The notes under the pieces are model-generated. The model made no database searches, was not told the DNA's origin, and saw nothing but the letters and a program-made list of their open reading frames with translations. Shown here one piece after another: positions 1,921 to 59,728 of a stretch of DNA of 64,000 nt. Each line of letters starts with the position of its first letter. Positions within the stretch are counted from its first letter, which is position 1. Location: positions 1-64,000 of the forward strand of contig ADNK01000765.1 of assembly GCA_000320545.1 (NCBI GenBank), given 5' to 3'. A program made the translations under genes and the position numbers. Origin of the DNA: Bigelowiella natans CCMP2755. Its lineage: Eukaryota; Protista; Cercozoa.

Positions 1921-3459
1921 TATGTGTGTGTCGCACTGGTTATTTTATAATCTGTGTTGGTGGTAGAAAAGATAGATACAACTCTTTCTGGCTGTCCTCC
2001 TGCTGCTTTGTTATGCACTTATGCACTTTTTGATGATGAGCTGCTTTGTGCTACCCCTACTTCTGCTACGCCTAGACCAAATTGAAATGAAGGTCGAAAA
2101 TGCATCATTGTCCAGCCTCGTCAGCAAGATTCGAAAGGATGGACTCGAATGGTAGCTATAGTTGTGGCGTAATGATAGTTGTGTTAATAGTTGTAGAAAG
2201 AGCAGCAGCAGTAGTAGTAGTAGTTGTAGTAGTAGTTGTTGTTGTTATAGTATGGCAGTAGTCATAATCATTGTGTGGTCGTCGTGATTAAGCACGTCAG
2301 CTCCAAACGAATAAAAATCCCGAAACACACACGTAAATATTAATGCACGCGCGCGCGTGTGTGTGTGCCGGTGCTCGTGTTCGGCGACAGGCAAAATTCC
2401 CTCCCCGAACTCAAAGAGGGCTCTAGTGACACTTATCAGCTCATCAAGGAGGACTCGCTTGAGAAACGGGTCGGTCGGTTAGCTAGTCTCTTTTCTCTAG
2501 ATCAGTGCTGCATCGTCTTCATGTAATCGCCACCACTGTTGTCTTCTTTGTCTTCTTCTTCTTCTTCTTCTTCTTCTTCTTCTTCTTGTCGTGGTCGTGG
2601 CGCCGTGGCGATGCTGACAACACGTTTCTGTTGTGTTGTGTTGTGTCGTGTTGCGTGTGTGTGTGTGAAAAGGGCGAGAACAACACCAAGTTCAAGCCAC
2701 GGCTCTTCAGACTGGTAGTAGCTTTCACATCTCCATCATCACAAGTGTCCATGCATAATAGCCCCAGCACGCCAACGTGTGCTGCCTCGAAGTTGTCGCG
2801 CCCACTGTATCACATTTACGTTCACATTGGTTGAATAAGCACGGGGAAAGATATATCGGCATGCTGCTTGCTGACTTCTATTTAGCTATCTCGCCAACCT
2901 ACACCTTCTCTGCACGATAACGATAATATTTCTTCCTTCTGTTCTGTAGGTTCAGGTCAAGGACGACTACTTCCTCAAATATTACGAGGAGCAGAAGAAA
3001 GGCGAGCGGTGGAGAGGTACGGAGAACCCACAGGGAAGGAGGAAGGGGGGGTTGAGAGGGATAAACGTGGTGCTAACGAGCAGCTTTATGCACTTTAAGT
3101 GATTTGCGGCCTCTTTTTATTTCTTGATTCACCACCCCATTTCCTCATGATTTTGGCTTTGGTATTTTGATCGATGATATATCTACCATTATTCCCAGGG
3201 GACATCCTCCTTTCCGCGAAGGGGGTAAGTAAATAAACAGCACAGCCCACGTGCATGCAGCCCTCCAGTTTTCATCATCATCATCATCATAACTATTGTC
3301 GTAAGCGATGTAGCCATATGTATAACATTGTGCCTTTTAACAAACCAAAGGTATCTGTGGAATTGGGAGAACGCCATGAACAAAAGCAAGGTGCTGAAGA
3401 AACTGTCGTTGCTTATTGAGTGGTGGGGGGGGGGGAGGGGGGGGTCCACGGCGTTGGTC

Positions 3460-3501
<42 letters not shown>

Positions 3502-4710
3502 ATTTCTACCCAATCTCTGGATATCGATGATGAATCGGCCGTTTATTTTAACAGAATTTATTCTGAAGACTGCCAACAGAGACTACCATCTCAGGGCAAT
3601 GAGGTGGGGCCTTCTGTTGCATTGTTTATTTACGTTACATTGCGACTGCACTCCGCCAAAAAAAATAGCGGTGTTCTCTGAGTGGGTGCGAGCCGATGAA
3701 ATGATACAATCACTGCTTAAAGTTGGTCTTGATTTAGTTCCAGCTTCTTTTTCAGTTTGAGAGGAGACCGTATCTTATTCCTAATCCCTTACTCGCAATA
3801 TCTTTCTCCCCCACCATCCCCCCCATAGACCTAAAATCGCGAGGGAGTGGGTCAAGGTACTAGCGTAAGAGAGAATAGAGTATTCCTATAGAAGAATCAT
3901 TGTGAAGGCGAGCAGAAATGAATTCCTACCTTCATTTACCTCCAGCTGTGTAGTTACCTGGGGATATCTCCTTTCATGTTGGTTTCGTTAATGCCACAAC
4001 TGCGCCTATTGATATCTTTCCCCCTGTCGTCGTCGTCGTCGTCGTTGTTGGTGTATTCCTTTTGTCCACAGGCCATCAACGAGCGTCTGGAAGCTTTCAC
4101 TCCGAAATCTTTCTTGAAGCAGAAGCAAGTACTCGGTTCCATCTCCCAGGTCAGTCCTGCTCGTTCAGAAAACTAAATTTGTGAAAGAATAGTCAACAAG
4201 CACGCACGAGGGGGGGGGGGGGGAGGTACGTGGTCATAGTAGTGCTTGTTGCAGTAGTGGCGCTTTTGCGTGGCCTCAGAGTGATAGGTCTCTTTTTGAC
4301 ATCTCCCTTTCCCCCCGCCTTTCGTACGTGTGCGTGATGTTTGCTGGCGATAGATGGTTGAATTTGTCCGAGAAAAGAGTCGGGACGACGAGAAAGGCAA
4401 GGATTGTGATTAGAAACGAGAATGACGTTATTGGGCATTTGACGATGAAAGATTGTATCTCCAAATTATCGATTAGTGCAACACAAATCCACTCTTTGTA
4501 TATGCCCGCCCCCCCCCCCTTCTAATTTTCGCTGCTTACCTAATGGTCTCATCGATTTGGTACTGCTCAGATTTTCCTGATATAGGCATCTCAAGTAGCA
4601 GCTTAGCGTCCTTAGATGAAGAGGACTACGTCGATACTTCATCAACCGACTACGGGTATGGTAATGGTGGCAATGTGTATACAACCACGATGCCTGCTGA
4701 ATGAATGTTG

Positions 4711-4744
<34 letters not shown>

Positions 4745-7085
4745 CGATGTGTGATGAATGAGAGCAGCAAGGGTATTTTTTTGGTTAGAAGACATCAACC
4801 GCCTTACAATATCATTCGATTATAGCACTGGTCTTCCCACGATATCCATCCATTCATCCCATCCACCAATGCATTGTCATCATCATCATCATCATCATCA
4901 TCGTCGTCGTCGTCGTCGTCGTCATCGTCATCTCATCATCAGGTTTGAGATGAACCGTTACTATCCTATAATCCATTCTCTCTCCATTATCACCGGCGAG
5001 GTTCGTACTTTGAGAAAGAAGAAGAAGGAAGAAGAAGGCATTCCTCCCCATGTCTACCGGAAACCAACCATTTCTCGGCACACCATCGATTAGTAGACGG
5101 CAAACATCATGACACTACTTCCTTTCATACTACTGCTCAGAAACCGAGCTCTGGGCCGAAGAATAGCGGGCTGTACACAGGCTTCGATCTTGAAAACACG
5201 CCAGATAAGCTTTATATGGATGGCAGTAAGGTGATTCTGCTGCTGCTATTCCTGGGGGAGGGTGGTGATGAAGCCCCTGTCTATTATCATTGTCAATTTT
5301 ATCGTCATCATTCAACCGATCCATCGACCCCTATGCTACTGCTGCTGCTGCTGCTTGAACAGATCCGGGCGGCGACTTTGGAGAAATGCGTGATGAAAGC
5401 TACCGCAGACGTAATAACAAAAGTAGTAGCTGTTAGAGAGAAGGTTACTGGCAGATGCATATACACACTACTGCGGCTGTTCTTTCAAGCTAATTGTAGG
5501 AGAGTATAATGGGTGAGAGCTGACAAATCTCGCAATGGTGTGTTGTATTAGGGAATTAACGAAACTCAAGTTGAAATGGTAATAATGCAGTAAGTGGTGG
5601 TAGCTGCTGATGCTGCATTTTGTGCCGTTGCCATCGCAAACAGGGCATGAATCGCAAACATAGCGGCGGCGCTGTTGCTTCTGGATGATGAAAAAAGAGA
5701 ACTCATTACTATTGATGATGAATGATGTTGAGTATGTCCGTTTGTGACGTATCTCGCTCTCTCTCCTTCCTGTTTTGTTGTTTCTCCTCCTTCTTCCAAA
5801 GATCTTGACGAATTTCCCCATCTCTACAACCCAAATGGAGCTCTTAAAGGTGTGTGATCCACCCCCCTCCGTATATTCCTATTATTACTATTATTGTCAT
5901 TATTATTATTGTTATTATTATTAGTATTATCATATCCGTCTCTACGCCATCATCATTATCACTATCATTACCACCATCATCACTGCCATCGCCATTGCTT
6001 TTCTTCTCTGATCGTTTTTCGCAGGCGTTGATAAAGAGATATTGCGTCCCAACTCCACTCAATCTCACTTCTGAGGTCAATTCGATATTCATGAGGGGGG
6101 GGGGAGAGCCTCTGTGTATGGATGGGTGATTGCCTATGTCACGATCGGGAAGGGGGGGGGGGGGGGGGACAAGGATAGGTATATTATAGCTGCATCAGGG
6201 AAAGGGGAGGCGGGGGGGGGGAGGGCTATCAAAAGGAAAATGTTACGACGACACGACAGCATGCCAGCATGCCAGCACGCACTGAACACATAACATACCA
6301 GCCCTTCTCCTCTTGATCTTCCGTTGACTGCACTGCTGCTGCTACTCACTTGAACAGGAGCTTGAAGACGTGAAGAAAACCATGGCTCAGATCAGAATAG
6401 CAGTCCTCCTCTTCATCAACATATGGGTACTACTACTCCCATCCATAATCAGAATTGTCATTAGCGCCATCAAGCCTCCTCCTCCTCCTCCTCATCCTCC
6501 TCATCATCATCATCATTATCACCATCAGCATCGCTATTCCAGTCTTGCATATACGAAAACTGTACTAATCCCCTTTCGCCCTTGATCAGCTCCGAACCCA
6601 TTCCTCCGACTTCACGACCGACACAGCGAGCCTGAAGAAGCATACCTCGGCCTTCCTCAACGCAGTCATGAACGCGGCCCTCTCGCCGTCCGAAGTCGAG
6701 ATCGCAGATCAAAACCTTACGTATCTGCACAACATCAATGCGTCGGTGGTCAAGCGCCTCCACTCCATCGAGGTTTGGAAGAATCATGTTAAGAGACGGC
6801 GGCGATTATGATTATGATGATGATAATGATGATGATGATCATGATGAGGAGGAACAAAAATTGGTCCCACAGCATCCCTGTTACGACAAGCAGTCGCTCC
6901 AGGAGGAGCAAGGGGTTGTTCGAAATGTGCTAATGCGAGCTGCTTTCTCGCTTGCTTGATATTGTCGTGTGTGCTAGCAATCAATTATTTGCTGAGCATG
7001 ATGATTGTGACTGTGGCTTTGTTCTTCTTGCTTCTCCAGGAACTCGAATCTGCAGGATCTGGTGTCCCCGAGAAGAGGGTAGAGT

Positions 7086-16086: not shown

Positions 16087-16442
16087 CTCGTCCGATTATT
16101 TTCTCATGTGCAGTGACCTGCACTGCTTCCGGCGACGGTGTTTAATTTGATATACGTATGCCCGTTGCATCTTCATGACCGATGTCAAAAAAAGTATAAA
16201 GATGGCGGTAATAATGCAGATACTTCCTGTATCTATTCGCTTTAGTTAGATCGTATTAGTCGGAACAATAATATGATCATGTCTAACTTATATTATGTAC
16301 GTAGCATAGCATAAAGCTTACACCTGTACATATTGCAGCTGCATGCACGCAGCACGCAGCACGCGTAAAGCGGCTACGTACAATACAGCAGGCCAGCGCA
16401 TGCACACGAGTGTGACAAGCATGACGACTGACTGCTACATGT

Positions 16443-16500
16443 GACGGATGTAATAAAGTGATTAAAGCTTTTCAATGGTTATAGTCATCCTGATTTAGCT
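16443..16500 (-). mobile_element. Degenerate LINE 3' tip
   Basis: Reverse-complement similarity to the conserved end aggatgaccattgaaaa...attacatccgtc of the LINE at 49460-51422. Confidence 0.6.
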
Positions 16501-18103: not shown

Positions 18104-19657
18104 TGTTGGTATATTCTTGGCGCGTCCGTGTTCTGGCGATGGGAGCAGCGACGGCGACTACGACTACGACGACAACGAGACTACGACGATGAGACACAGT
18201 GAATATGCTGCGGGCGCTATTTTGATTGACACAGTTGCATTATGCAAAGAATTCTGTTTCCGACGCAATCGAGCACGAAAATACTCGATCGGCAAAGAAA
18301 CACGCAATACGAGAGGGAGCGAGAGGGGTCTTGGCCCTGCAGCTCGTACGAAATTTTGCTGCCGGAAGAGGTCGATCGCCCAACATAAAAACGAAATACG
18401 ATTTTAGTCTGACGACAATGACTATTCTATGTCGTCGGCTAATATAGGGGGTTCTGTGTGTGTGTGCTCGGCATGCGAATAATTTCCCTAAAACTTTTGA
18501 CTGAACTTCTGGGCCACTACAACAGTCACAACAGTTTCCAGCGTTTCGGCCCATGGCGGATGTGCGCTGCGGGGTTGATGATGGTGTGACGACGACGATT
18601 GAAAGCCGTCATCACGCAATCCAGTTTTCACCAAACAGAGAAGAAGGAGATTCTCGACCTAGCAGCCATGGCACAGATCGGAGTATCAGTAGAACACGCC
18701 GAAGATTGCTTGTCGCGCAGCCAGTTTTACGCTACCGAGCTTTACAAGGACTAGTGGAAACAATGCAACCGGCCCTGGGTCAAACCTTTTCCGAGGCGGC
18801 TTCATTTACGGGGTTGTTAAATCGGCGCGTCTGTGGTTCCCTTGCAATACCGTACGGAATTCAACAGCGGTGCAGTATTGAAAACTCGCTACCAAGATTA
18901 GATACCCTGCCTTCAAAAAGTACGAATATGATGTTGGAGCCCGGCTTTTTGGCAGGTCTAATGCTGATGCTTCTACTTCTGATCCTCATCATTCTCTGGT
19001 ATCGCTAACACTTTATGCATTGTGCAAGTCATGAAGAAACCAATGCAAATATGGTTTAATGATGCCTTCGGATACATATCGAGATAGATACTATAAGAAA
19101 TCTTTATTCAGTTTTAATGGTCAATCTGGGACACTCATCCAGTGAATTTGGTTTTCTAATTCAGGAACACATAACAACAGTCCTGAGAATCATATTTTAA
19201 TGTTGCGCAGTAGTCTAAGCAAATTACTCATGAACATTGTATTCTTACATGCTATGCGAAATGTTTATCTCCTCATCATCAGTGAGCTGTATGAATTTAC
19301 CGGAACATAGTTTCTCGATGAATACATGCTTATGTAGTATAGCTTTTGAGCTCTGTTGGTGTCATTGAAATGAAGATAGGCATGGCTTATATACTCATGT
19401 CTTAGGTACTCATGTATGTAGACAGATCATGTTGCGATGCAGTAAAGGGAGCATGCCACACGTAGGCAAGCGCGCTGTACGCACGACTACCAAAGCAAAG
19501 ATTTACCAAATTATAGTTGCAGCCGCAATATGCGTACATGCAGCACGCTCAAGTAAACCCGAAGTATTATCCAAGCCTATGCCTCGCATCGGCTGCATAT
19601 TTTTAACGTAATAAACATTGCGTGTGCCTCTTTGCGTCTTATGTCTCGAAAGCCAGA

Positions 19658-19698
<41 letters not shown>

Positions 19699-19704
<6 letters not shown>

Positions 19705-19745
19705 CGGATGTAATGAAATGTTTAAATTGTTTCAATGGTCATCCT
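19699..19745 (-). mobile_element. About 45-bp LINE 3' tip ending in an intact (TA)n tract (19661-19700)
   Basis: Reverse complement reads aggatgaccattgaaacaatttaaacatttcattacatccgtctca followed by (TA)n. Confidence 0.8.
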
Positions 19746-19794
19746 TATATATATATGTATGTATATATATTAAATTATCTCTCTGAACTAATTA

Positions 19795-19910
19795 CATAGA
19801 TACTGTAAAATCACGAAAAGATGTATGGCATGATATTGTGTGTCGGTTCCATAGATACTGTAAAATCACGAAAAGATGTGTGGCATGATAATATTGTGTG
19901 TCGGTTCCAT
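19795..19910 (+). repeat. About 55-bp tandem duplication
   Basis: catagatactgtaaaatcacgaaaagatgt(a/g)tggcatgat..attgtgtgtcggttc occurs twice. Confidence 0.85.
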
Positions 19911-19995
19911 AATGTACTCTTCGAAAAGATGTAACCATTAAGATGTACTAAGCTATTATTCTTCGTAAGTATTGTATTAGCTTCTTTTAAATAGA

Positions 19996-20029
<34 letters not shown>

Positions 20030-20032
<3 letters not shown>

Positions 20033-20364
20033 CACATGCAAAACATTGCAAGACATGGACCACATTCTGCAATGCAGGAAATACGGACCACAGAGACTCA
20101 GAATCAACAAACAACTGACGGCGATCATGGATCGCAATGATGAGACCACGCGCCTCACAACCGCACGAAAAACAAGTGGAGAAGCTGCGCGCAAAGCGCG
20201 ACATGCTAGACCAAATCATGATGCATTTTCATGCATGCGCCATGTGACCAAGGAAACAAACAGATGCAATTTAAGCGCTGTAGCCGCTGCATTGCACAGC
20301 TACATTAGGATGACCATTGAAAAATTTAAACATTTCATTACATCCGTCTCATATGTGCATGTGT
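20030..20364 (+). mobile_element. 5'-truncated LINE fragment, copy A (C-terminal CCHC zinc knuckle + 3' end)
   Basis: Translates to DTCKTLQDMDHILQC...AVAAALHSYIRMTIEK, homologous to the end of ORF 50154-51401. Starts right after a (TA)n tract. Confidence 0.88.
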
Positions 20365-20374
20365 AAAAAGATTC

Positions 20375-20563
20375 ACGAACTGTTGCGCGCAGCGCGCGAC
20401 AACATCGATCGCACGAGGACGCTTTCAAATGCATGAAGCACGTGGTGGCAGAAACCAACAGACACAATGTCAGCGCTGTAGCCGCTGCATTGCACAGCTA
20501 CATCAGGATGACCATTGAAAAAATTTAATTGTTCATTACATCCGTCTCACATGCACACACACA
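20375..20563 (+). mobile_element. 5'-truncated LINE fragment, copy B (same subfamily as 49460-51422)
   Basis: Near-identical to about 51245-51422. Confidence 0.9.
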
Positions 20564-20589
20564 TCTAGATGTGTGTGATGAGACGCCAG

Positions 20590-21342
20590 GGAAACTCAGT
20601 ATTAGAGCGGAAGCATCGACCTATTAATAATGGGATTATGGCGATGCTCCTGCAAAATGTTGAGGATCGGCACAACTGGCATAAATATTTGGAGATGATA
20701 ACATTTAGTGTGAATACCACAATCGATAAGTGTGGTTATTCCCCGGCTCACCTCATGTTCGGATATCAGCCAAAGTTCGTGGCTGATATGGAGAGCAAGT
20801 CGGTGGCGGCTCCAGGGACCGGGGACCTCGATAAGAGGATCCAAGATCTGGAAAAGATGCGGCTGTTGTATGCTACTATGAAAGAGGATTATAAATTAGT
20901 GAAAAATTTCACGAGGAACGAGAAGCTTAATACTCAAGACGAATATAAAGTAGGGGATATGGTGTGGCTTTTCCGCAAGGAAAATCGTAAAGAAAATGCT
21001 GTTACGAAAAAATATGAAATTAAAAAGACTGGCCCTGTGACTATCGTGGCCAGGAGTAGCAGATCCCATACCTATCAAATTATTGACCCGAAAACGGGGT
21101 ATAATAATAATGTACACGCGAAACATCTTTCGCCTTATGGTACATTTACCCCGTTACCAGAAGTGCGCCCGGTAGCTCCAGATGTAGAGGAGAAATTTGC
21201 TGCCGACGAGAATGAGGCTTCGGATGGTTCCTCAGACTCGTCGGATTCCCAGGGGCCTTCTGGTAACCGAATTTCGCGGGATAACATCGTCCGGGGTAAA
21301 CGTAATAGGAGACCGGCGGATATAGGTCCGTATATTTCGTAG
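20590..21342 (+). mobile_element. Ty3/Gypsy-like LTR retrotransposon integrase C-terminal remnant
   Basis: GNSVLERKHRPI..NWHKYL..FSVNTT..GYSPAHLMFG..YKVGDMVWL..TGPVTI..VHAKHLSPY, i.e. the end of the rve core plus a GPY/F region. Confidence 0.85.
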
Positions 21343-21499
21343 ATTTTGTATTTTCGCAAATATATGCTACTGTATAAATAAATTGGTGGCGGTGCAGTTG
21401 GTGCAAAATTTTTCTTTTCTTCCCTTTTCTTCTAATTTTCTTCTAGCACGCGTGATCCTACTCATATGTTGTTATTATTGAGTTAGGGGTGCAAAAATT

Positions 21500-22092
21500 G
21501 GGGGGGGGGGGTAGTGTGGTCAGTTTGCGACCACCAAATGCATGTAAGCGCGCATGTACATGCATAGCATAAATGGTAGTGCATGCTGTGCTTTATTATA
21601 TCTTACATTTGCATGTGAGCATGTTTATATAGGTTCAGGCTATCGTTCCTGTGCCTTAATTAGTCATATAGGGGCATGTAACGTGAGTTACATGCCCGGA
21701 AATACAGTTATAGGAGGGGGCACGTGCAACTGGGAACATCCTTCTCGGTTGTTTCCCCAACCGTGGATGTTCCTAGGAGCACCCTCGGTATTTTACTTAC
21801 GACATGGAGTCGGCCTACGTATTGTAATATTATAGGGGAAAATGGCCTACATTTTCCCTAATATTTTGGGCAACTGCTGCTGCGTAGCATGTTGCTGCTG
21901 GGGACGCTGTGTGCCCAGCACATGATGTGTATTGGCGCGCAACGCGCTAGTTTAGCACACTCTAAAAGACCCGCAAGCAAGCGGTAAGCTTTCTCCTTTG
22001 GTAGTTTGCTCATGCATGCTCATGTCATGTTATCTATTCAACAGGGTTTTAGTTTTGTGGATTTAAAGCATTGTAAAAGCATACATTGCACA
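21500..22092 (+). mobile_element. Polypurine tract and putative 3' LTR of the Gypsy element
   Basis: G-run at 21500-21511 followed by TG at 21515, downstream of the integrase stop. The right boundary is a guess. Confidence 0.45.
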
Positions 22093-22194
22093 GTTGTGTT
22101 GTTAGCGCTGCGCAATACAACTACAGTCATCATCTAGTCTAGGCAATTGCCAAATAGTGCAAGAGCCCTAACAGCAACAGCAATAAACATTGTT

Positions 22195-22280
22195 AATAGC
22201 GCTATAGCCGCTGCATTACGCAGCTACATATAAGGATGACAACATTGAACAAATTCAATCGATTCATTACGTCAGTCTTA
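22195..22280 (+). mobile_element. Degenerate LINE 3' tip
   Basis: agcgctatagccgctgcattacgcagctacat..aggatgac..cattgaa matches the LINE end. Confidence 0.7.
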
Positions 22281-22838
22281 CAAGCGATGTGGACGTGTAC
22301 CTGCTACGCAGCATGGCTAGATGGGCGTGCGTGATTGGAACGAGCATGCATGTTGAAAAGTCGACGCAAGACAGGAGCAAGTGTACTGTGAGCGATGCAA
22401 AGTAATGTGTGCATGTCATTCCCGTACAATTTAGCTTTACACGTATACATGATACCATAATTCACAATTTCACATTAATGTATCCTCGTTATTCTTTGTT
22501 AAACGGACTTACATCTGTAACGCATAGAGCACAATCAAGATGGCTAGTCCAAGCAAGTTGGCAAGTTGCACATATATGTCCAGTGGTTCTACTTATTTTC
22601 ATTTAAATAGAAACAGAATGTGTTGCAATATAAAATAACAGATATAACTGCTGGCCAGGTCTAAATGGAGATGGCAGGTGGTTGAGTAAACACTTCATTG
22701 TATTAATACTTTGACGCTTCACTCCAAAATAAAGTTATACCAAAGAAGATGGTCGTTAGTATTGTTATGATGATGGGGCCATGGTCTAACGGAAAAGTGA
22801 AAGGTTGACCAGATTTTACATCGGATTGTGGACACCAG

Positions 22839-24621
22839 CTACATCGAAGAAGTTTGTGTCGCGCCGCTGGTAGGTGCGGCAGCAGCTGCATGCTTAGCTT
22901 TTTGTCGCCTAAAAACGGAAAGCATAATCCAGAATCACGATATATCATCGGTTCCCACATATGTCTGAATGAATACCTGCATGCAGCACAACGACAGATC
23001 CCTCTACAAGCAGGACAAGCCCAGCTAAAAAACAAAAAGGGTATGAATAAGAGACGGACTCTTGGACAAGAGTGGATGTGGAACCAAACGGAATGCAATC
23101 TGCGGGACTGCAGATTGAAGCACTACCTTGCCTGCTGTTCCGACGTTGGGGCATTTTCACTGTAGAACTTGTTCAAACAACGGTCACAATACCTAAAGAG
23201 TAGTTGTAGTAGTAGTAGTAGTAGTAGTAGTAGGGATTACTCTCACGGTGCAGAATTAGAGGTTAAGTAAAGCCATTACTTTTTCCTGCATCCCTGACGT
23301 TTACCTGGTACGGATTTAAGATATACAGATCATTTTTATAGAAGGTTTTGACTCGGAAGTACTGATTTGATTGCATCACTGGCCAAGAAAATGTGGAGTT
23401 TGTATCTAATAACTTTACCTTTTCCCCGAAGTGACGGCAAGTTTTTGCACAGGATTAGGGAGGACAGCAGACATCTACTTTTGCACTGATAAGATGATAC
23501 AAAGGAGGTATTGAGTTTCGAAATTATCCCATTTAAGTAAGAAAATAATCCGCTAACCTGGTGACAACTGGAGCCACTTCCATTTCCAGAGACTTGCTTA
23601 GACCCTGAAGCCGTAGCAGATGCGGTATTCGTACTGGAAGGTACATGGCTATTGTTGCTCCTTGCCACGTTATTACCACCTGCTGTTTATCCAGAACATG
23701 TGTTACTTAAGGACAGTGGGGGGGGGGGAATCAATTAGTGGTGATACCTTTTCTTTTCTCCTCTTCCTCATCTTCATCCTCATCGTCCTCATCTTCGTCA
23801 GGATCATACTCGGGTGCTCTGGCTGGCTTCAAAGGAGGGGTATTTGGGAGCATTGCCTCCTTCGATGCAGGTATTTTTAATTTTTTATTCAGGTCTTGGA
23901 CATCCGTCCGCCTTCTCTTGTTAGTCCAAAACCGTGTCACAGAAACAGGAAGCTGAAATTCGGCTCCCAAAGAAAGTAATTGTGAAGAAGTGCTTTCTCT
24001 TTTCTTCCCATTTCTCGTGAATTTACCCAAATTACGCACTTCACCATTTGCAATAATGACAGGGGCTGGGAGGCGAGTGCTCTCAGGCAGAGGGGAGCTA
24101 AGATCAAGATAGGAAATACCAGGAGGGTAGAGGGGCGATGGCATCGAAAATGTCGGCGTGGCAAGAGCAATATCATTCCCCGTTGAGAGGATAGATGAAG
24201 GAAGTAGATTTGGAGTGGATGATGGCTGTAAGGATGTTGACTGAGGGGTGGAGGATGGGTGCAAGGAGCTGCTTTTATTTCGTGCAGAGGAGATTGCTGG
24301 AGATACCATGCTGTCAATGAAGGTAGTAGCAGTGGTCATGTCAATTTTTCCTTTCGCCAGAGAAGAAGTTGAGGAAGAATTCGATGACGATGAAGTGGAA
24401 TTTGAAGATGACGAAGATGACGCCAACGAAACGGTTATTTTAGGCCCTACTGACACACTTGCTTTCTTGTTGGCATCTCTCTGTTCTCTATTGGATCGTC
24501 CTGATTTTAAGGGATCTGATGCTACGGCGCCTTTGCTCTTTAGCATCGATGCTGTTGGACCAGTCGCCGGGGGGGTGTTGTTGAGACCCCTCAGAGTGCC
24601 ATAAACAGTGTTACTACTCAT
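22839..24621 (-). CDS. Ser-rich protein with C-terminal zf-4CXXC_R1 zinc finger (CDCA7/JMJ-associated type), multi-exon
   Basis: GSSCHQ|CKSR...YCDRCLNKFY...WACPACRGICRCAACR, with a long low-complexity N-terminus and an acidic tract. The start may lie further upstream. Confidence 0.8.
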
Positions 24622-48795: not shown

Positions 48796-49459
48796 AACGT
48801 ACTCGCCGACATAGCAATAATCCTGCATATTTCGTGTGTAAAATCCTACAGCTAGCTCTGAAAACTATCTACTGAGCATTGAACCATTAATCCTCATGCG
48901 TTGCGTGTGTCTATATTGTATGTATAAGACGGATGTCATAGCAATGACATGATTTCATGTGCATGTGTGTGTGATGTGTGTGTGTGTGTGTGTATGATTG
49001 ACAAAATAAAAGCACACGATCTAGCGATGGATGCTCGCCCTCTAGCGCGAGCAGCACGTAGCGCCACAAGCTACCAAGTCAGGTTCATGTTCTCACGCGT
49101 AGCACGTCGCACATGGCGCATGAACAACAACGACTTGCCCTTTGCTAGTTTGCGCGCACAAATAAACTCATCTCAACGGACCTGGCACCACAATTTGAAC
49201 AATGTGTGGAGCCGCCCTAGCGCACTGTGAGTGCCATGTTGCATGTGCGCAAAGCACAGTGTTTTTCGGCGCAATTAGCTAGCTAGACAACGTTGGGGGC
49301 GATCAAGATCAGGCTAGCAGGGTTGGGTTTGCATGCTAGCTAGCTAACTGGCATGGGGTTGGGATCAGGATCAGCTAGGCCAGCAAACTAGCGTGACTGT
49401 GTGCACAAACACCATGGTTAGCCATGTTCAACATGTCACGTGGATGGGGTACCCGAGAT

Positions 49460-51422
49460 GGCTCACGCAAGGCGGCCATTTTTTGTCTCATCCCCAAGGC
49501 CAACAAAGAACTTGACACCCCTCTCAACGGGAGAACAATTTCTCTCCTGCAAGTGGCTTCAAAAATGGAAGACAAACTGACAGAGCAACGTCTCCGCGAA
49601 GCTGTGCCCCCCAAAAACATTGGCAAACATCAGTGCGCATTCATGAAAAATCGATCCTGTGAAACTGCACTCACAAAGATGACGCAGTCAATCGAGGATG
49701 GAGTGTGCAATGAAAAGCTTGCAGCCATCACATTGTTTGCAGATGCCTCCAAAGCTCATCCAAAAGCCTGGCATTCCGGCATGATGCGCAAGTCACATGA
49801 CAAATGCGGAATGCGAGGCTCGCTGTTGCTGTGGATCGACGACTGGCTCAGAGATCGCACCGCAAGATTCAGATTTGGCAATGCTCTCTCTGAGCACATG
49901 AACCTTGGGAGCGGCGTCCCCGAAGGATCATCTCTCAGCTGTTTCCTTTTCATGACCTGTTGCGATGTTCACGAACAAATTGCCAACACAGATTTCCAAA
50001 CGTGCTGTGACGACGTCACCCCCTGCAAATCATTTTCGCCAAACCGATGGGGGAAAATGCAAGATGATGTCCAGGCCGACCTGAACCAAACGACGGACTG
50101 GTGCATGAAATGGCGGATGCGATTCAATGGGGACAAGAGCGGGCACCTCATGATTGACAAAAGAAATGAAGCCCACCGACACCAAACCTCCTGGAACATC
50201 TCTCTCAATCTCCAAGGCAAAACAAAAAGAGTCGACAGCGGCAGATGTCTCGGTCAGCGGACCAATCTTCGACAACAAATTGACCTTTGAAAAACATGCT
50301 CTTGCTTCTCACCTGAGATTGCAAAAGAAGCGAAGGTTTTTGTCAAGGTTGTGTTGTTCCAGACACCTTGCACCGCCAAATGTCAGACTGAAATTTTGCA
50401 AATCATGGTTCCTTGCATCCAGCAGATGCGCAGCTCCAACATGGAGATCACGAAGAAACATGCGAATGAAACAGATGGATTCCATGGAATCCCAAACCCT
50501 GAAACGTGCATTGGGATTGCCTGGATCCATCTCCAACGACGTCCCCCACGTCCTCACTGGCACGTTGCCACCCCGATGTCAAACCAAAGTGCAGTGTGCT
50601 AAATCATGGTTGCGCACTCATGCATGGATCGACACAGGCAGCGGTCCTCAAATCCATGAGGGAATGAATGATTGGAGCAGTCATGGCTTCATCATTGAAA
50701 ATCGAAAAATGCCAGATGGCACATCGTGGATTGATGTGTCCACAAATGCGTGGAACAAAGCATCCTTGTTTCGTCGGCTCAAATCGATCACTGACGATTT
50801 GTTAGATGACGAATTGCCCACCGTTTTGGCGACAACAGAGGCGCTGAAAAAAGAACTGAAAAAACATCACAAGGTGGTGAAATCCTGTGCTTTCAACGAA
50901 TTCGAAGAGGAATGGTCCAATGATTCATCACGCGCTGTGCATCTCAAGAATCTTGGATTCCTCCCGTCATCTTCGATCACCGGCATCAAACCAAAACTTT
51001 CAAGTGTTGCTACATCATGGATGCGCGCCATCTGTGGTGTCGGCAATCTTGGAAAATTCATGTTCTCACGTGGACAATGCACAGAGAAAGATGCCACGTG
51101 CGATGCATGTGGCATCCTGAAGGACATGGATCATCTCCTGCAATGTCCAACACACAGTCGAGAACAAATCAGATTGCGCAATCAAATGCGCGCGATCATG
51201 AATCGCAACGACGACACGAACCGGCTGACAAAGGCTGAAAAGGACTCCAGAACTGCTGCGCGCAGTGCGCGGCAACATCGGTCGCATGAGGACGCTTTCA
51301 AATGCATGAAGCACGTGGTGGCAGAAACCAACAGATGTGACATTAGCGCTGTAGCCGCTGCATTGCACAGCTACATCAGGATGACCATTGAAAAAATTTA
51401 ATTCTTCATTGCATCCGTCTCA
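49460..51422 (+). mobile_element. Non-LTR retrotransposon (LINE) ORF2 remnant: RT domain to CCHC knuckle, 5'-truncated, frameshifted at about 50260, TpA-hypermutated (copy C)
   Basis: LIPK..RTISLL..QCAFMKNRSC..DASKAHPKAWH..GVPEGSSLSCFLF..CCDD..W..KWRMRFNGDK..CLG/IFDNKLTF..CDACG..DHLLQC. Confidence 0.93.
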
Positions 51423-52206
51423 CAAACACAGTTGCATTTGTGCGCATGTGATGTCATGTCCATTGTCATGCAGGGTTGGGCTTGTAGGCAGGGTCGATCG
51501 GGTCAAAGGGAAATTGCGACAGAGACTCATTGCATGCTAGCATGTGTCATGACGCAGCGTGACTGTCTAGCTGTGCTGTGCGCGCAATGGCACGACAGCA
51601 GTGCGATTCCATGCGCCTGTGGTGCAACGTGCTTGTTACAGCTCACACGCACATGTGTAATAAGTGATCTGGACGCGACTTGTGACGGCTTATAGTTATG
51701 ACGAACCTTGATGCATGAGCCTATAGATTGATGTGTTAGAAATATACATAGGGATGTGCACATTAGCTTGCGCAACTATGTTCATGTGCTCATCATCTCA
51801 CTGTGTTTCCTATGCGTGCCTCTACCACATTGTAATGTTGTCGCAGCAGTGGTCCTATCTACATCCGATGCGGCCGCACACCGCAACCTGCGACTAACAT
51901 TCAATACAAGCGTGCAGATCCGAGCCATAGGTCGAGAGCTGCATTGTTCGGGTGATTATACATGCTACAGCTTCCTCTTCTTCTTCTTTTATTGTTGCTG
52001 TTAGTAGCTCATACTTGCTATTTCTGTTCGTATGGTTTCATGATAGTATTTCTAGTCTGCTTTCGACGGCGATACAGCATTTCCGCGAAAAATAATAATG
52101 CGGGGCTACCTCCCTCTCACAGTGACACACATCATACTATCCTATATCCTTCAGAACTGCTAGAATTTAGCGGGAAGTTTACTCATATCCCATGAGGGCT
52201 CACTCA

Positions 52207-56988: not shown

Positions 56989-57137
56989 ATGCATTTTCAT
57001 GCATGCATGCAACATGTGACCAAGGAAACGAACATACACAATTTAAGCGCTGTAGCCGCTATAGGTACCGCTACATTGCATAGCTACATTAGGATGACCA
57101 TTGGAAAAATTTAAACATTTCATTACATCCGTCTCAT
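56989..57137 (+). mobile_element. LINE 3' fragment, copy D (subfamily of copy A)
   Basis: Near-identical to 20221-20352 but retains more TpA. Confidence 0.88.
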
Positions 57138-57263
57138 ATTTCATTGTTTACACTTTACACATCGTATGCCTCTATGCACAACTATGAGTTGCGCTACGTA
57201 TACATGCAGCGCAGATGTGTGATGATGTATCAGATGCACCTAGCTAGCTTAATAATTGTACAT

Positions 57264-57325
57264 ATGAGACGGATGTAATGAATAATTAAATTTTTTCAAT
57301 GGTCATCCTGATGTAGCTGTGCAAA
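57264..57325 (-). mobile_element. LINE 3' tip, copy E, inverted relative to D
   Basis: Reverse complement reads gcacagctacatcaggatgaccattgaaaaaatttaattattcattacatccgtctca. Confidence 0.85.
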
Positions 57326-57518: not shown

Positions 57519-57609
57519 CAAGCGCTGTAGCCGCAGCTTTGCATAGCTACATTATTAGGATGACTATTGCATTAATAAAAGATTTAATTTTTACTAGCTT
57601 CCGTCTCAC
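57519..57609 (+). mobile_element. Degenerate LINE 3' tip, copy F
   Basis: agcgctgtagccgc..gcatagctacattattaggatgactattg..ccgtctca. Confidence 0.75.
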
Positions 57610-57810
57610 AATTGAAAATTTAACATTCTTTACATCGATTCGTCTTACAATTAAAAAAGTAGCTGTGTCCCATCGTATCGTCAACTATCTACCAAGCACC
57701 GCTACATCTAGACATGCAAACACAAACGTGCCAATTTTAGTATTTAACAGTTAACTTCATGCGTACACAAAGTCTTGCTTGTGTAAGCCAGCAAGAAGCC
57801 CAATGATCCA

Positions 57811-59355
57811 TCATATTAGGCAACTCAATCCAGACTGAAGAGGATGAGGGATGCATCCAGTAGGAACATTGAAATTTGCTGCACCCGTGATAGGTTGTTG
57901 CGCTGGACAGTAGCTCTTACCTGCAGCCAAGGTTCCGTGAAGAGAACTTACTTGAGAAGCCGAGAGTTCTGCGGACATGATGATGGCCTGCCAAATTTTC
58001 CCTATGAAAGGATATCCACCCCCTTCGTACTCATATCCAACATGTAATTCTTCCCCACCATTCACACCGCTGAATGACCCAGTGCTTTTGAGAATTCCGT
58101 CTATGTACACTTTCCCTGTGTAGGAACCTGCAGACACGGCGCTACGCGTGAAAACGATGGAATGCGCTGATACTCGTCCAGCGGAGTCAAATATCCCCGG
58201 ACTAGGATCAAATGAAGAGATGTAGTTTCCATCTTGAACACCTAGGGCGGTGTTTCCAGAATTCTTACCGACAAACCATTGAGTCCCGCCCGAGGTGTCT
58301 TTCCCACCGAAGATCGCTGAATAAGTCCGTGAATTTGTTCCTGTGTACTGGAACCAGGCAGCCACGGTGTATGCACCACCTCCTCCACTTGCGGTAATCA
58401 AATCAGACATCTTGAGGCCTGTGTTGATAGAGCCAGAACTGAAGACAAGATGATCCCCCGAGCTGCTAACGCCACCTGAAATGGTTCCATCGTTCCCCCG
58501 TGCGCTAATATCCTTTATTACTCCGCCATTCACTGGACTTATGCCAGGGTTATAGTAAGCCACAACTGAATTTGGACAAACGGCTGCTCCACAGTGTAGA
58601 TCATTTCTAGCAAGCCTTCCGTGAAGGATTGCCGCCTCTGCAGCACTAAATTCCGTTTTTAGGATAATTGCTTGCCAGATTTTGCCTTTGAACGAATAAG
58701 CTCCTCCGAATTCCTTTCCTATAGTGAGTTCCTCTTGATTATTGACACCAGTAAAGCTCGCACTTGCCTTAAACGCGCCATCGATGTACACTTTCCCTGT
58801 GTAACTGCCACCAGAAGCTGCGCTACGAGTGTAGATGATGGAGTGAGCTGACGCCCGTCCTGCGGCGTCGAATATCCCAGGACTAGCAACGAAATTGGAA
58901 CGGTAGTTTCCATCTTGAACACCAAGGGCGGTGTTGCCAGAATTCTTACCAATGAACCATTCAGTCCCGCCTGTGGCGTCTTTTCCACCAAAGATCGCTG
59001 AGTAGGTCTGTGAATCTGTTCCCGTGTATTGAAACCATGCTGCCACGGTATACGTACCAGCGCCACCGCTTGCCGCGATGACATCGGACATTTTTATCCC
59101 TGTGAGTATGGAGCCGCCATTGAAGGCGACATGATGGCCTGATGTGGACACACTCCCTTCCACGGTACCGTCATTGCCACGCGGCCCCAAGTCTTTCCAT
59201 TTGCCACCTGAGATCGGGGAGGCGTCTTGGTGATAGTAGGCCAGCACATCAGATGTACAACCCTGCAAAGCGTGAACGGGTGCGCTGAGTAGCAGCACCA
59301 TCAAGAAATGGAGCACCCGTAATGTTCTATTTCCATCCATGGCCATCATCTGCAT
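57811..59355 (-). CDS. Intronless secreted protein with two tandem LamG/ConA-like (Laminin_G_3) beta-sandwich domains
   Basis: Signal-like VLHFLMVLLLSAPVHA, then two roughly 225-aa repeats (KD...RGNDGT..G, YTVAAWF, GKVYIDG, F.GKIWQAII....S). The ORF is open to 59424. Confidence 0.8.
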   Translation of the reverse strand: MQMMAMDGNRTLRVLHFLMVLLLSAPVHALQGCTSDVLAYYHQDASPISGGKWKDLGPRGNDGTVEGSVSTSGHHVAFNGGSILTGIKMSDVIAASGGAGTYTVAAWFQYTGTDSQTYSAIFGGKDATGGTEWFIGKNSGNTALGVQDGNYRSNFVASPGIFDAAGRASAHSIIYTRSAASGGSYTGKVYIDGAFKASASFTGVNNQEELTIGKEFGGAYSFKGKIWQAIILKTEFSAAEAAILHGRLARNDLHCGAAVCPNSVVAYYNPGISPVNGGVIKDISARGNDGTISGGVSSSGDHLVFSSGSINTGLKMSDLITASGGGGAYTVAAWFQYTGTNSRTYSAIFGGKDTSGGTQWFVGKNSGNTALGVQDGNYISSFDPSPGIFDSAGRVSAHSIVFTRSAVSAGSYTGKVYIDGILKSTGSFSGVNGGEELHVGYEYEGGGYPFIGKIWQAIIMSAELSASQVSSLHGTLAAGKSYCPAQQPITGAANFNVPTGCIPHPLQSGLSCLI

Positions 59356-59417
59356 CGCTGTTGTGACGAAACCTACAAATTTACAAATTGCCCTAGATAT
59401 ATTACACATCGAATTCA

Positions 59418-59728
59418 GGTTCATCTCTCAAGATTTCGTACTGTCATTGCGCGGCAAGACCAGAATGTTGCATGCGATTTTTGTAATGCGACATCCAGAA
59501 TAGTCCCTGTAGCATAAAAATACCATCATTTCTGCCCATTCTGTGCGACGCTCGCTCGTAGCTCTTGTCGTCGAGCGATGCATTTAACTCATCTGGGTGA
59601 ATTCCATGTAGATCTAGATCTAGATCTAATCCATGAATTTCTAGACTTCCATGGACTACTTTAAGACCGACAGAAGACAAGTTTTGTTTTCGGAAATCCT
59701 GAAATCTTGAAATCTTGAGAGATGAACC
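59418..59728. mobile_element. MITE with 20-bp perfect terminal inverted repeats
   Basis: ggttcatctctcaagatttc (59418-59437) and gaaatcttgagagatgaacc (59709-59728). Flanked by CA on the left and TA on the right, consistent with a TA target-site duplication. Confidence 0.75.

Follow-up and report, generated by a model that had tools for sequence, protein, structure and literature searches.

The window analyzed here comprises 64,000 nucleotides of Bigelowiella natans CCMP2755 (contig ADNK01000765.1, positions 1 to 64,000 of the forward strand) and carries a scatter of related LINE-derived repeats. Two of these lie in tandem on the plus strand: copy A (20052 to 20355), a ~300-nt 3' end of an older sister LINE family with the end motif ACATTTCATTAC..., and copy B (20365 to 20552), a 188-nt 5'-truncated 3' end from an older grade of subfamilies ('CAC') that holds the 15-mer (20460 to 20474) singled out in the initial annotation of this DNA. 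Directly downstream of copy B (20553 to 20580, plus strand) is its tail or target microsatellite, a palindrome of the form (CA)n TCTAGA (TG)n that alternates pyrimidine and purine without CG. Copies A and B adjoin a retroelement remnant (20590 to 21342) that has a normal TpA content (observed/expected ~1.1) and reaches about 10 times the single-copy depth in the sequencing runs. Copy C (49415 to 51424, plus strand) is a 5'-truncated LINE of 2 kb spanning element positions 2962 to 4964; it is erased of TpA, its translation retains a remnant of the Pfam domain RVT_1, and it includes the C-terminus of ORF2 (stop at 51399 to 51401) with its own version of the 15-mer (51333 to 51347). Copy D (57025 to 57139, plus strand) is a ~115-nt 3' end of the older family with an internal 12-nt duplication, and copy E (57257 to 57324, minus strand) is a 68-nt 3' end fragment with 96% identity to B. 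The remaining pieces are a diverged 3' end fragment of another old LINE family (57521 to 57610, plus), a second diverged 3' end fragment (22198 to 22285, plus), a 55-nt 3' end fragment (19697 to 19751, minus) adjoined by a pure (TA)n tail at ~19660-19697, and a diverged 3' end fragment of 61 nt (16440 to 16500, minus). Elsewhere in the window, a 536-aa open frame on the minus strand (57811 to 59421) encodes a Laminin_G_3 domain (PF13385) with mainly metagenomic relatives and contains a 300-nt internal direct repeat (58097 to 58396 and 58778 to 59077, 79% alike).

A 216-nt query returned more than 1,500 first-look candidates in the B. natans genome (91.4 Mb, 3,736 contigs searched). The copies have the same 3' terminus, ...CATCCGTCTCA, after which comes (TA)n or a mosaic of pyrimidines and purines, and their 5' ends vary from 189 to more than 1,690 nt upstream of it, as is typical of non-LTR retrotransposons. 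At full length, the element measures 4,964 nt, and three such copies are 99.8-99.9% alike and have the same ends; in these three, ORF1 (476 aa) and ORF2 (1,164 aa) are both open, and the latter carries the Exo_endo_phos_2 and RVT_1 domains. The endonuclease and reverse transcriptase domains, the variable 5' truncation, the common 3' end and the microsatellite tails identify the repeats as 5'-truncated 3' ends of an APE-type LINE. The near identity of the three copies and their open reading frames indicate that the family was active very recently, and five more copies match exactly in their final 683 nt. Fragments of the reverse transcriptase match B. natans gene models (jgi/Bigna1) with 68-71% identity over short stretches. 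A transcriptome entry labelled Prorocentrum lima (P0001) is 88% identical to the reverse transcriptase of this LINE; its source is probably a chlorarachniophyte that contaminated the data set, and not the dinoflagellate itself.

The insertions are often found in (TA)n microsatellites, as at 19660-19697 in the window and at many other loci (L019, L043, L048, L061 and L087 among them), and the element may insert specifically at (TA)n by preference, to judge from the pure (TA)n tails and the TA-rich DNA on its 5' side. The palindrome (CA)n-TCTAGA-(TG)n, or CATCTAGATG, recurs directly 3' of LINE ends (20553-20580 and loci L007, L009, L016, L018 and L097), and runs of (GCTA)n likewise recur just past the 3' ends. 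Perhaps the element favours the palindromic motif as a target, or perhaps the motif is produced repeatedly. The commonest size class genome-wide is that of very short 3' fragments (~90-117 nt), which often sit in tandem or inverted beside longer copies, as in the succession of 20253-20355 and 20365-20552. Assembled contigs of public runs on the interval 19000-23000 showed paralogues piling up on the LINE parts, with a summed contig depth over the last 100 nt of the LINE of ~1,200-1,500 times single copy; the unique flanks within the interval were identical in four runs, as judged from the assembled contigs.

The initial annotation had proposed that copies B and C differ in the 15-mer by reciprocal CA and TG dinucleotides that descend from TA, and all the letters that it had quoted stand in place (B at 20460-20474, C at 51333-51347, TGC of A at 20265 and CAC of D at 57037). 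Its codon parsing is also correct: the 15-mer lies in frame near the C-terminus of ORF2 and reads R-C-D-I-S in C and R-H-N-V-S in B. Over the aligned part of copy C (51238 to 51425), the two copies differ at 19 of 188 bases. The differences include reciprocal CA/TG at 20463, 20465 and 20468, within 8 bases of each other, and TA against CA or TG at 20471 and 20537. When the same number of changes was placed at random in 20,000 simulations, at least three reciprocal sites arose with a frequency of 0.00025.

We polarized these changes with 151 pattern matches, alignments of 81-124 copies, a likelihood tree and parsimony; trees on such short fragments resolve weakly outside the starred branches. 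The postulated common ancestor of B and C, AGA TAT AAT ATT AGC, occurred in none of the ~117 aligned copies nor among the 100 matches listed of the 151 found. At the first dinucleotide site (CAC in B, TGT in C), the TGC and TGT states form a nested young clade of 51 copies that includes C, CAC marks a paraphyletic older grade of 18 copies that includes B, and TAC and TTC are found in the deepest relatives, so that TAC is ancestral at depth only. Tree and parsimony place the origin of TGY from CAY on one internal branch. Hence, the site is an inherited subfamily marker rather than the post-insertion change that had been assumed, and the codon difference between B and C was inherited from their source elements. 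The second site divides the original claim in two: the TG of C is a private change from TA (TGT AAC in its kin, TGT GAC in C), as proposed, but the CA of B is itself ancestral. CA is also ancestral at the third site (97 of 117 copies) and was kept in C, the TG of B being a private double change. At the fourth, the proposed direction holds, as TA is ancestral in 96 of 118 copies and the change from TTAGC to TCAGC is private to B. Parsimony thus assigns to B the private changes CA to TG at 20468-69 and TA to CA at 20471, plus two others, and TA was the ancestral state in the relevant lineage at just two of the four dinucleotide sites of the 15-mer.

Comparisons with the other copies of the window were similarly mixed. 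Copy D has TA twice within ccgcTAcattgcaTAgc (~57069-57085), where A has TG and CA; copy E also has TA twice, at places where B has TG and C has TG. The inference that TAC preceded the TGC of A and the CAC of D agrees with the composition of that family (TA in 6 copies, TG in 4, CA in 1), and catTAc is ancestral at its column as proposed (TA 71, CA 41, TG 10). The ccgcTAc of D, which had also been read as ancestral, is a singleton among 123 copies, and the change there therefore runs in the opposite direction. Reasoning from reciprocal sites is valid and can be applied elsewhere; the main example given for it combines inherited markers with private hits.

The mutation spectrum was obtained by tree parsimony from 76 copies over the last 695 nt. 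On terminal branches, TpA changed to CpA or TpG at 38 of 961 opportunities, compared to 54 of 17,798 for other A:T to G:C changes, a 13-fold excess (p = 3e-25). This count supersedes an initial nearest-neighbour count of private changes (11.6-fold, 10 events). Neither CpG transitions (1.1-fold, p = 0.8) nor changes from CpA or TpG to TpA (1.2-fold) were elevated in the same tree. Copies entered the analysis because they resembled B or fitted a pattern that includes TTAGC and GTAGC, and thus two TpA; conversions at these two are therefore under-sampled, which makes the rates for the last 190 nt conservative and the persistence of those two TpA uninformative. The terminal branches also carry 11 private CA/TG swaps, well under one of each kind being expected from average rates. 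Swaps from CA to TG such as that of copy B fit a course in which an ordinary transition from C to T first creates a TpA, whose other base hypermutation would then convert.

An ancestor with CG at these sites would also yield reciprocal states, as deamination of methylcytosine leaves TG in one copy and CA in another, and some columns of the alignment (367, 463, 479 and 584, for example) do vary between CG and TG or CA. The initial annotation had itself named a CG consensus as fatal to its reading, and this objection fails. Among the ~117 copies, CG was absent at the first two sites of the 15-mer and present once at the third; and CpG, whose transitions were not elevated, is not depleted in the LINE (observed/expected 1.06 in the 3' 683 nt and 0.88 in the full element, against 0.85 in the window). 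TpA stands at 0.78 in the window and at 0.07 in copy C. With intact copies carrying TA rather than CG at sites that are CA or TG elsewhere, CpG decay has next to no chance of being the explanation.

No special process would be needed if B and C simply came from different subfamilies that had accumulated ordinary clustered substitutions, perhaps with selection acting on the His/Cys/Tyr/Phe codon of ORF2. The flagged stretch is indeed coding, the first site is diagnostic of subfamilies (TGC, TGT, CAC, TTC and TAC groups stand apart in the 151 pattern matches), and the tree has the form of a ladder. Yet the internal branches, which represent the source lineage, show a 7.8-fold excess of TpA to CpA or TpG changes (p = 2e-12), and the ~ten changes that separate the youngest subfamily from its predecessor include TGT to TGC, TTAC to TCAC and the conversion of its own stop from TAA to TGA. 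Against ordinary substitution also stands the clustering of three reciprocal sites in 8 nt in the simulations described above. Furthermore, dead 5'-truncated copies carry the same bias, so selection is not its cause. We regard an origin by ordinary substitution as highly improbable.

The ancestral state could be read directly by taking a natural intact copy (L109) as the reference. It contains 205 TpA, 200 of them in the first 4,222 nt and 5 in the last 740 nt, and the 3' region of the 15-mer therefore has little left to convert. Six older copies (C, L022, L025, L002, L010 and L016), scored at the TpA of the intact copy upstream of position 4230, read TA at 7 sites, CA at 112, TG at 141, CG at 6 and something else at 22; CA or TG account for 253 of the 288 outcomes and CG for 2%. 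Copy C by itself kept 3 of 70 such sites and reads CA at 22, TG at 39 and CG at 2. The retention of TA by intact copies where older ones have CA or TG confirms the direction of change that the initial annotation had put forward. Its proposal of independent mutation of each copy after insertion is borne out by pairs of copies in which both members are converted, which agree at 301 sites and are reciprocal at 208 (41%); both CA and TG are seen among the copies at 30 of 39 sites. Together with the TA of the intact copies, this mixture of agreement and reciprocity is explained only by independent conversion of an ancestral TA. The near absence of CG indicates that each TpA is hit once, a changed site no longer being a target. 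As had been suggested, both strands are hit: T>C and A>G changes each number 19 on terminal branches, and strand outcomes at the TpA of the intact copy are close to even (CA 113, TG 142, p = 0.08). The support for direction, strand equality, independence and lack of CG is far stronger upstream in the LINE, copy C included, than in the 15-mer itself.

Very probably, then, the CA-versus-TG differences were left by a hypermutation that works directly on the DNA of LINE copies and makes A:T to G:C changes specifically at TpA. Each TpA is hit once, on either strand at random, to give TpG or CpA; with the target gone, CG hardly ever arises. Because the strand is chosen at random in each copy, two copies hit independently should have the same outcome at roughly half of their sites and reciprocal outcomes at the others. 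The enzyme may be an adenine deaminase, a candidate suggested by a recent preprint (Mettrop et al., bioRxiv 10.64898/2026.01.13.699255).

The extent of conversion does not follow age. Copies with 0-0.2% of other divergence range from 0% to 92% in TpA conversion. At one extreme, L114 carries just 2 other changes in 1,045 nt but conversions at 58 of its 63 TpA; the full-length copy L123 (G000:C1193:59160-64323) has 68 of 200 converted with 3 other changes in 3,827 nt; and sister copies as young as these two are 0-5% converted. The erasure is, therefore, copy-specific and burst-like rather than clock-like. Within L123, the hits occupy positions 1-800 and 2,800-4,560, increasing from 2,800 onward until they are near-complete by 3,500-4,500, and the ~100 TpA between the two zones are untouched (runs z = -8.6). 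The 5' domain of this copy is biased to TG (12 TG to 3 CA). Its ORF2 is still open despite the half-erasure. In seven lightly hit copies, the hits fall almost exclusively at 3,980-4,222, just 5' of the TA-free 3' end. Lightly hit copies lie, for example, at C2903:4700-9859 and C2167:4480-9638. Judged from one half-erased and seven lightly hit copies, some of whose hits are shared by descent, erasure starts at the ends of the element, at the 3' end first, and then proceeds inward.

Erasure also ends within a few hundred bases of the element borders. The observed/expected ratio of TA is 0.03-0.12 inside erased elements and 0.7-1.0 within 300 nt outside (0.6-1.0 in the flanks of copy C), and the non-LINE DNA that flanks some copies is TA-poor as well for a few hundred bases. 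Three TpA, at element positions 4343, 4551 and 4912 (~50796, 51004 and 51365 in copy C), survive in nearly all erased copies. They are of the CTAN type, yet CTAN sites further upstream were converted, and sampling bias does not explain their survival. The sparing rule for CTA and TAG that the initial annotation had offered held only weakly among copies that are fully erased (odds ratio 4.5, p = 0.058). In L123, TpA preceded by C were converted in 8% of cases compared to 21-22% for those preceded by A or T (p = 0.03), and CTAG in 0 of 5, both figures being confounded with position in the element. A correspondence between an erased body and a converted (TA)n tail proved inconsistent, since L022 is erased with a nearly pure tail and L057 is intact with a mosaic one.

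Bursts of this kind could also result from editing during retrotransposition, in which the LINE RNA or first-strand cDNA would be deaminated at UpA or TpA in the manner of ADAR or APOBEC enzymes and the copies would be born mutated. APOBEC3G leaves twin gradients on retroviral cDNA. The gradients at the LINE ends resemble these, and 34-92% erasure is found in copies that have otherwise hardly diverged, as editing at birth would predict. An editor of RNA or of a single cDNA strand would, however, produce changes in one direction, whereas the two strands were hit equally (19:19 on terminal branches; 113:142 at intact-copy sites), and strand-coordinated runs of CA or TG were not significant in any of seven copies. 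The TA-poor non-LINE flanks of some copies also argue for action on resident DNA, and the preprint describes the same spectrum arising in place, in viral inserts that are single-copy and do not move by retrotransposition (bioRxiv 10.64898/2026.01.13.699255). Editing of the retrotransposition intermediates is thus very unlikely to be the source of the footprints.

Hypermutation of TpA has a peculiar consequence for coding sequences. Enumeration of the possible changes shows that conversion to CpA or TpG never creates a stop codon; it only removes TAA and TAG or turns TAA into TGA. Because the changes are stop-free, erased copies retain long open frames, and copy C is one of them. The conversions found in the youngest subfamily further indicate that source elements get hit yet stay mobile. 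Partly erased elements may in this way pass their footprints to daughter subfamilies, and such inheritance would account for the nearly TA-free last 740 nt even in the intact element and for much of the CA/TG variation in the 3' region, the His/Cys/Tyr codon being one case. Consensus sequences of older and younger subfamilies gave no sign of a progressive TpA loss in the last 683 nt, where all have 5-9 TpA; this segment was therefore erased before the sampled subfamilies split. We tentatively propose, at somewhat less than even chances, that a front of hypermutation advances inward from the ends, 3' first, that its stop-free nature lets elements stay mobile, and that the active lineage keeps a target-free 3' end and loses TpA at the front, as when its own stop went from TAA to TGA, so that the defence is partly outrun by the exhaustion of its targets. 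If so, the LINE family would provide a natural series in time that could help to learn what guides the enzyme.

The process itself is already known. Mutation-accumulation lines of B. natans underwent ~1,000-fold local hypermutation that was exclusively TpA to TpG or CpA and that affected a giant-virus insert and a virophage insert in some lines only; TpA-poor coding sequences were enriched in 'Endonuclease-reverse transcriptase', RT and DDE domains, and the candidate put forward for the enzyme was an ADAT2-like deaminase (Mettrop et al., bioRxiv 10.64898/2026.01.13.699255). Our literature search found no further papers describing a TpA hypermutation process. As a genome defence or mutator, the conversion of TpA to CpA or TpG is unusual, and its first description dates from 2026; the details on bursts, borders, entry from the ends, stop-free erasure and inheritance are additions to the preprint as far as its available text goes; that text does not mention the words retrotransposon, stop codon, nonsense, missense, gradient, CTAG or trinucleotide, and uses 'line' only in 'MA line'. 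The finding flagged in copies B and C belongs to a clean natural record of TpA hypermutation. Dozens of LINE copies at every stage of erasure record hits that are independent, limited to one per site, strand-symmetric, burst-like, confined to the element and end-first. Stop-free erasure is also a trap for gene prediction and for calling copies of transposable elements 'intact'.

The process in the accumulation lines has in common with that of the LINE its restriction to A:T to G:C transitions at TpA on both strands, a local rate orders of magnitude above background that spares some regions or lines, and TpA-poor stretches rich in CpA and TpG that carry RT and endonuclease-RT domains. It differs in that it was measured in viral inserts, the domains of transposable elements being reported there solely as an enrichment among TpA-poor coding sequences. 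Here, a multicopy and still active LINE with intact, TA-bearing references reveals the independence of each copy, the single hit per site, the entry from the ends and the inheritance. The LINE family is, for this reason, a better substrate for study than single-copy viral inserts, as intact copies give the ancestral state directly. Fungal RIP similarly ruins copies of mobile elements in place through dinucleotide-specific transitions, with a skewed signature and fairly sharp borders. However, RIP converts CpA to TpA, enriches TpA and makes stop codons, whereas the LINE process destroys TpA and makes none; and RIP depends on duplication, whereas the main target in the preprint is single-copy. 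The footprints of APOBEC3 and ADAR in mammalian retroelements are also clustered deaminase-type transitions with a neighbour preference, which in ADAR is for U 5' of the edited A. They are, however, strand-specific and bound to RNA or cDNA, in contrast to the strand-equal changes of the LINE on resident DNA. In vertebrate repeats, CpG decay by methylation and deamination likewise turns a given site into CA in some copies and TG in others, but its ancestor is CG, whereas the ancestor here is TA, in an element in which CpG is neither depleted nor hypermutable.
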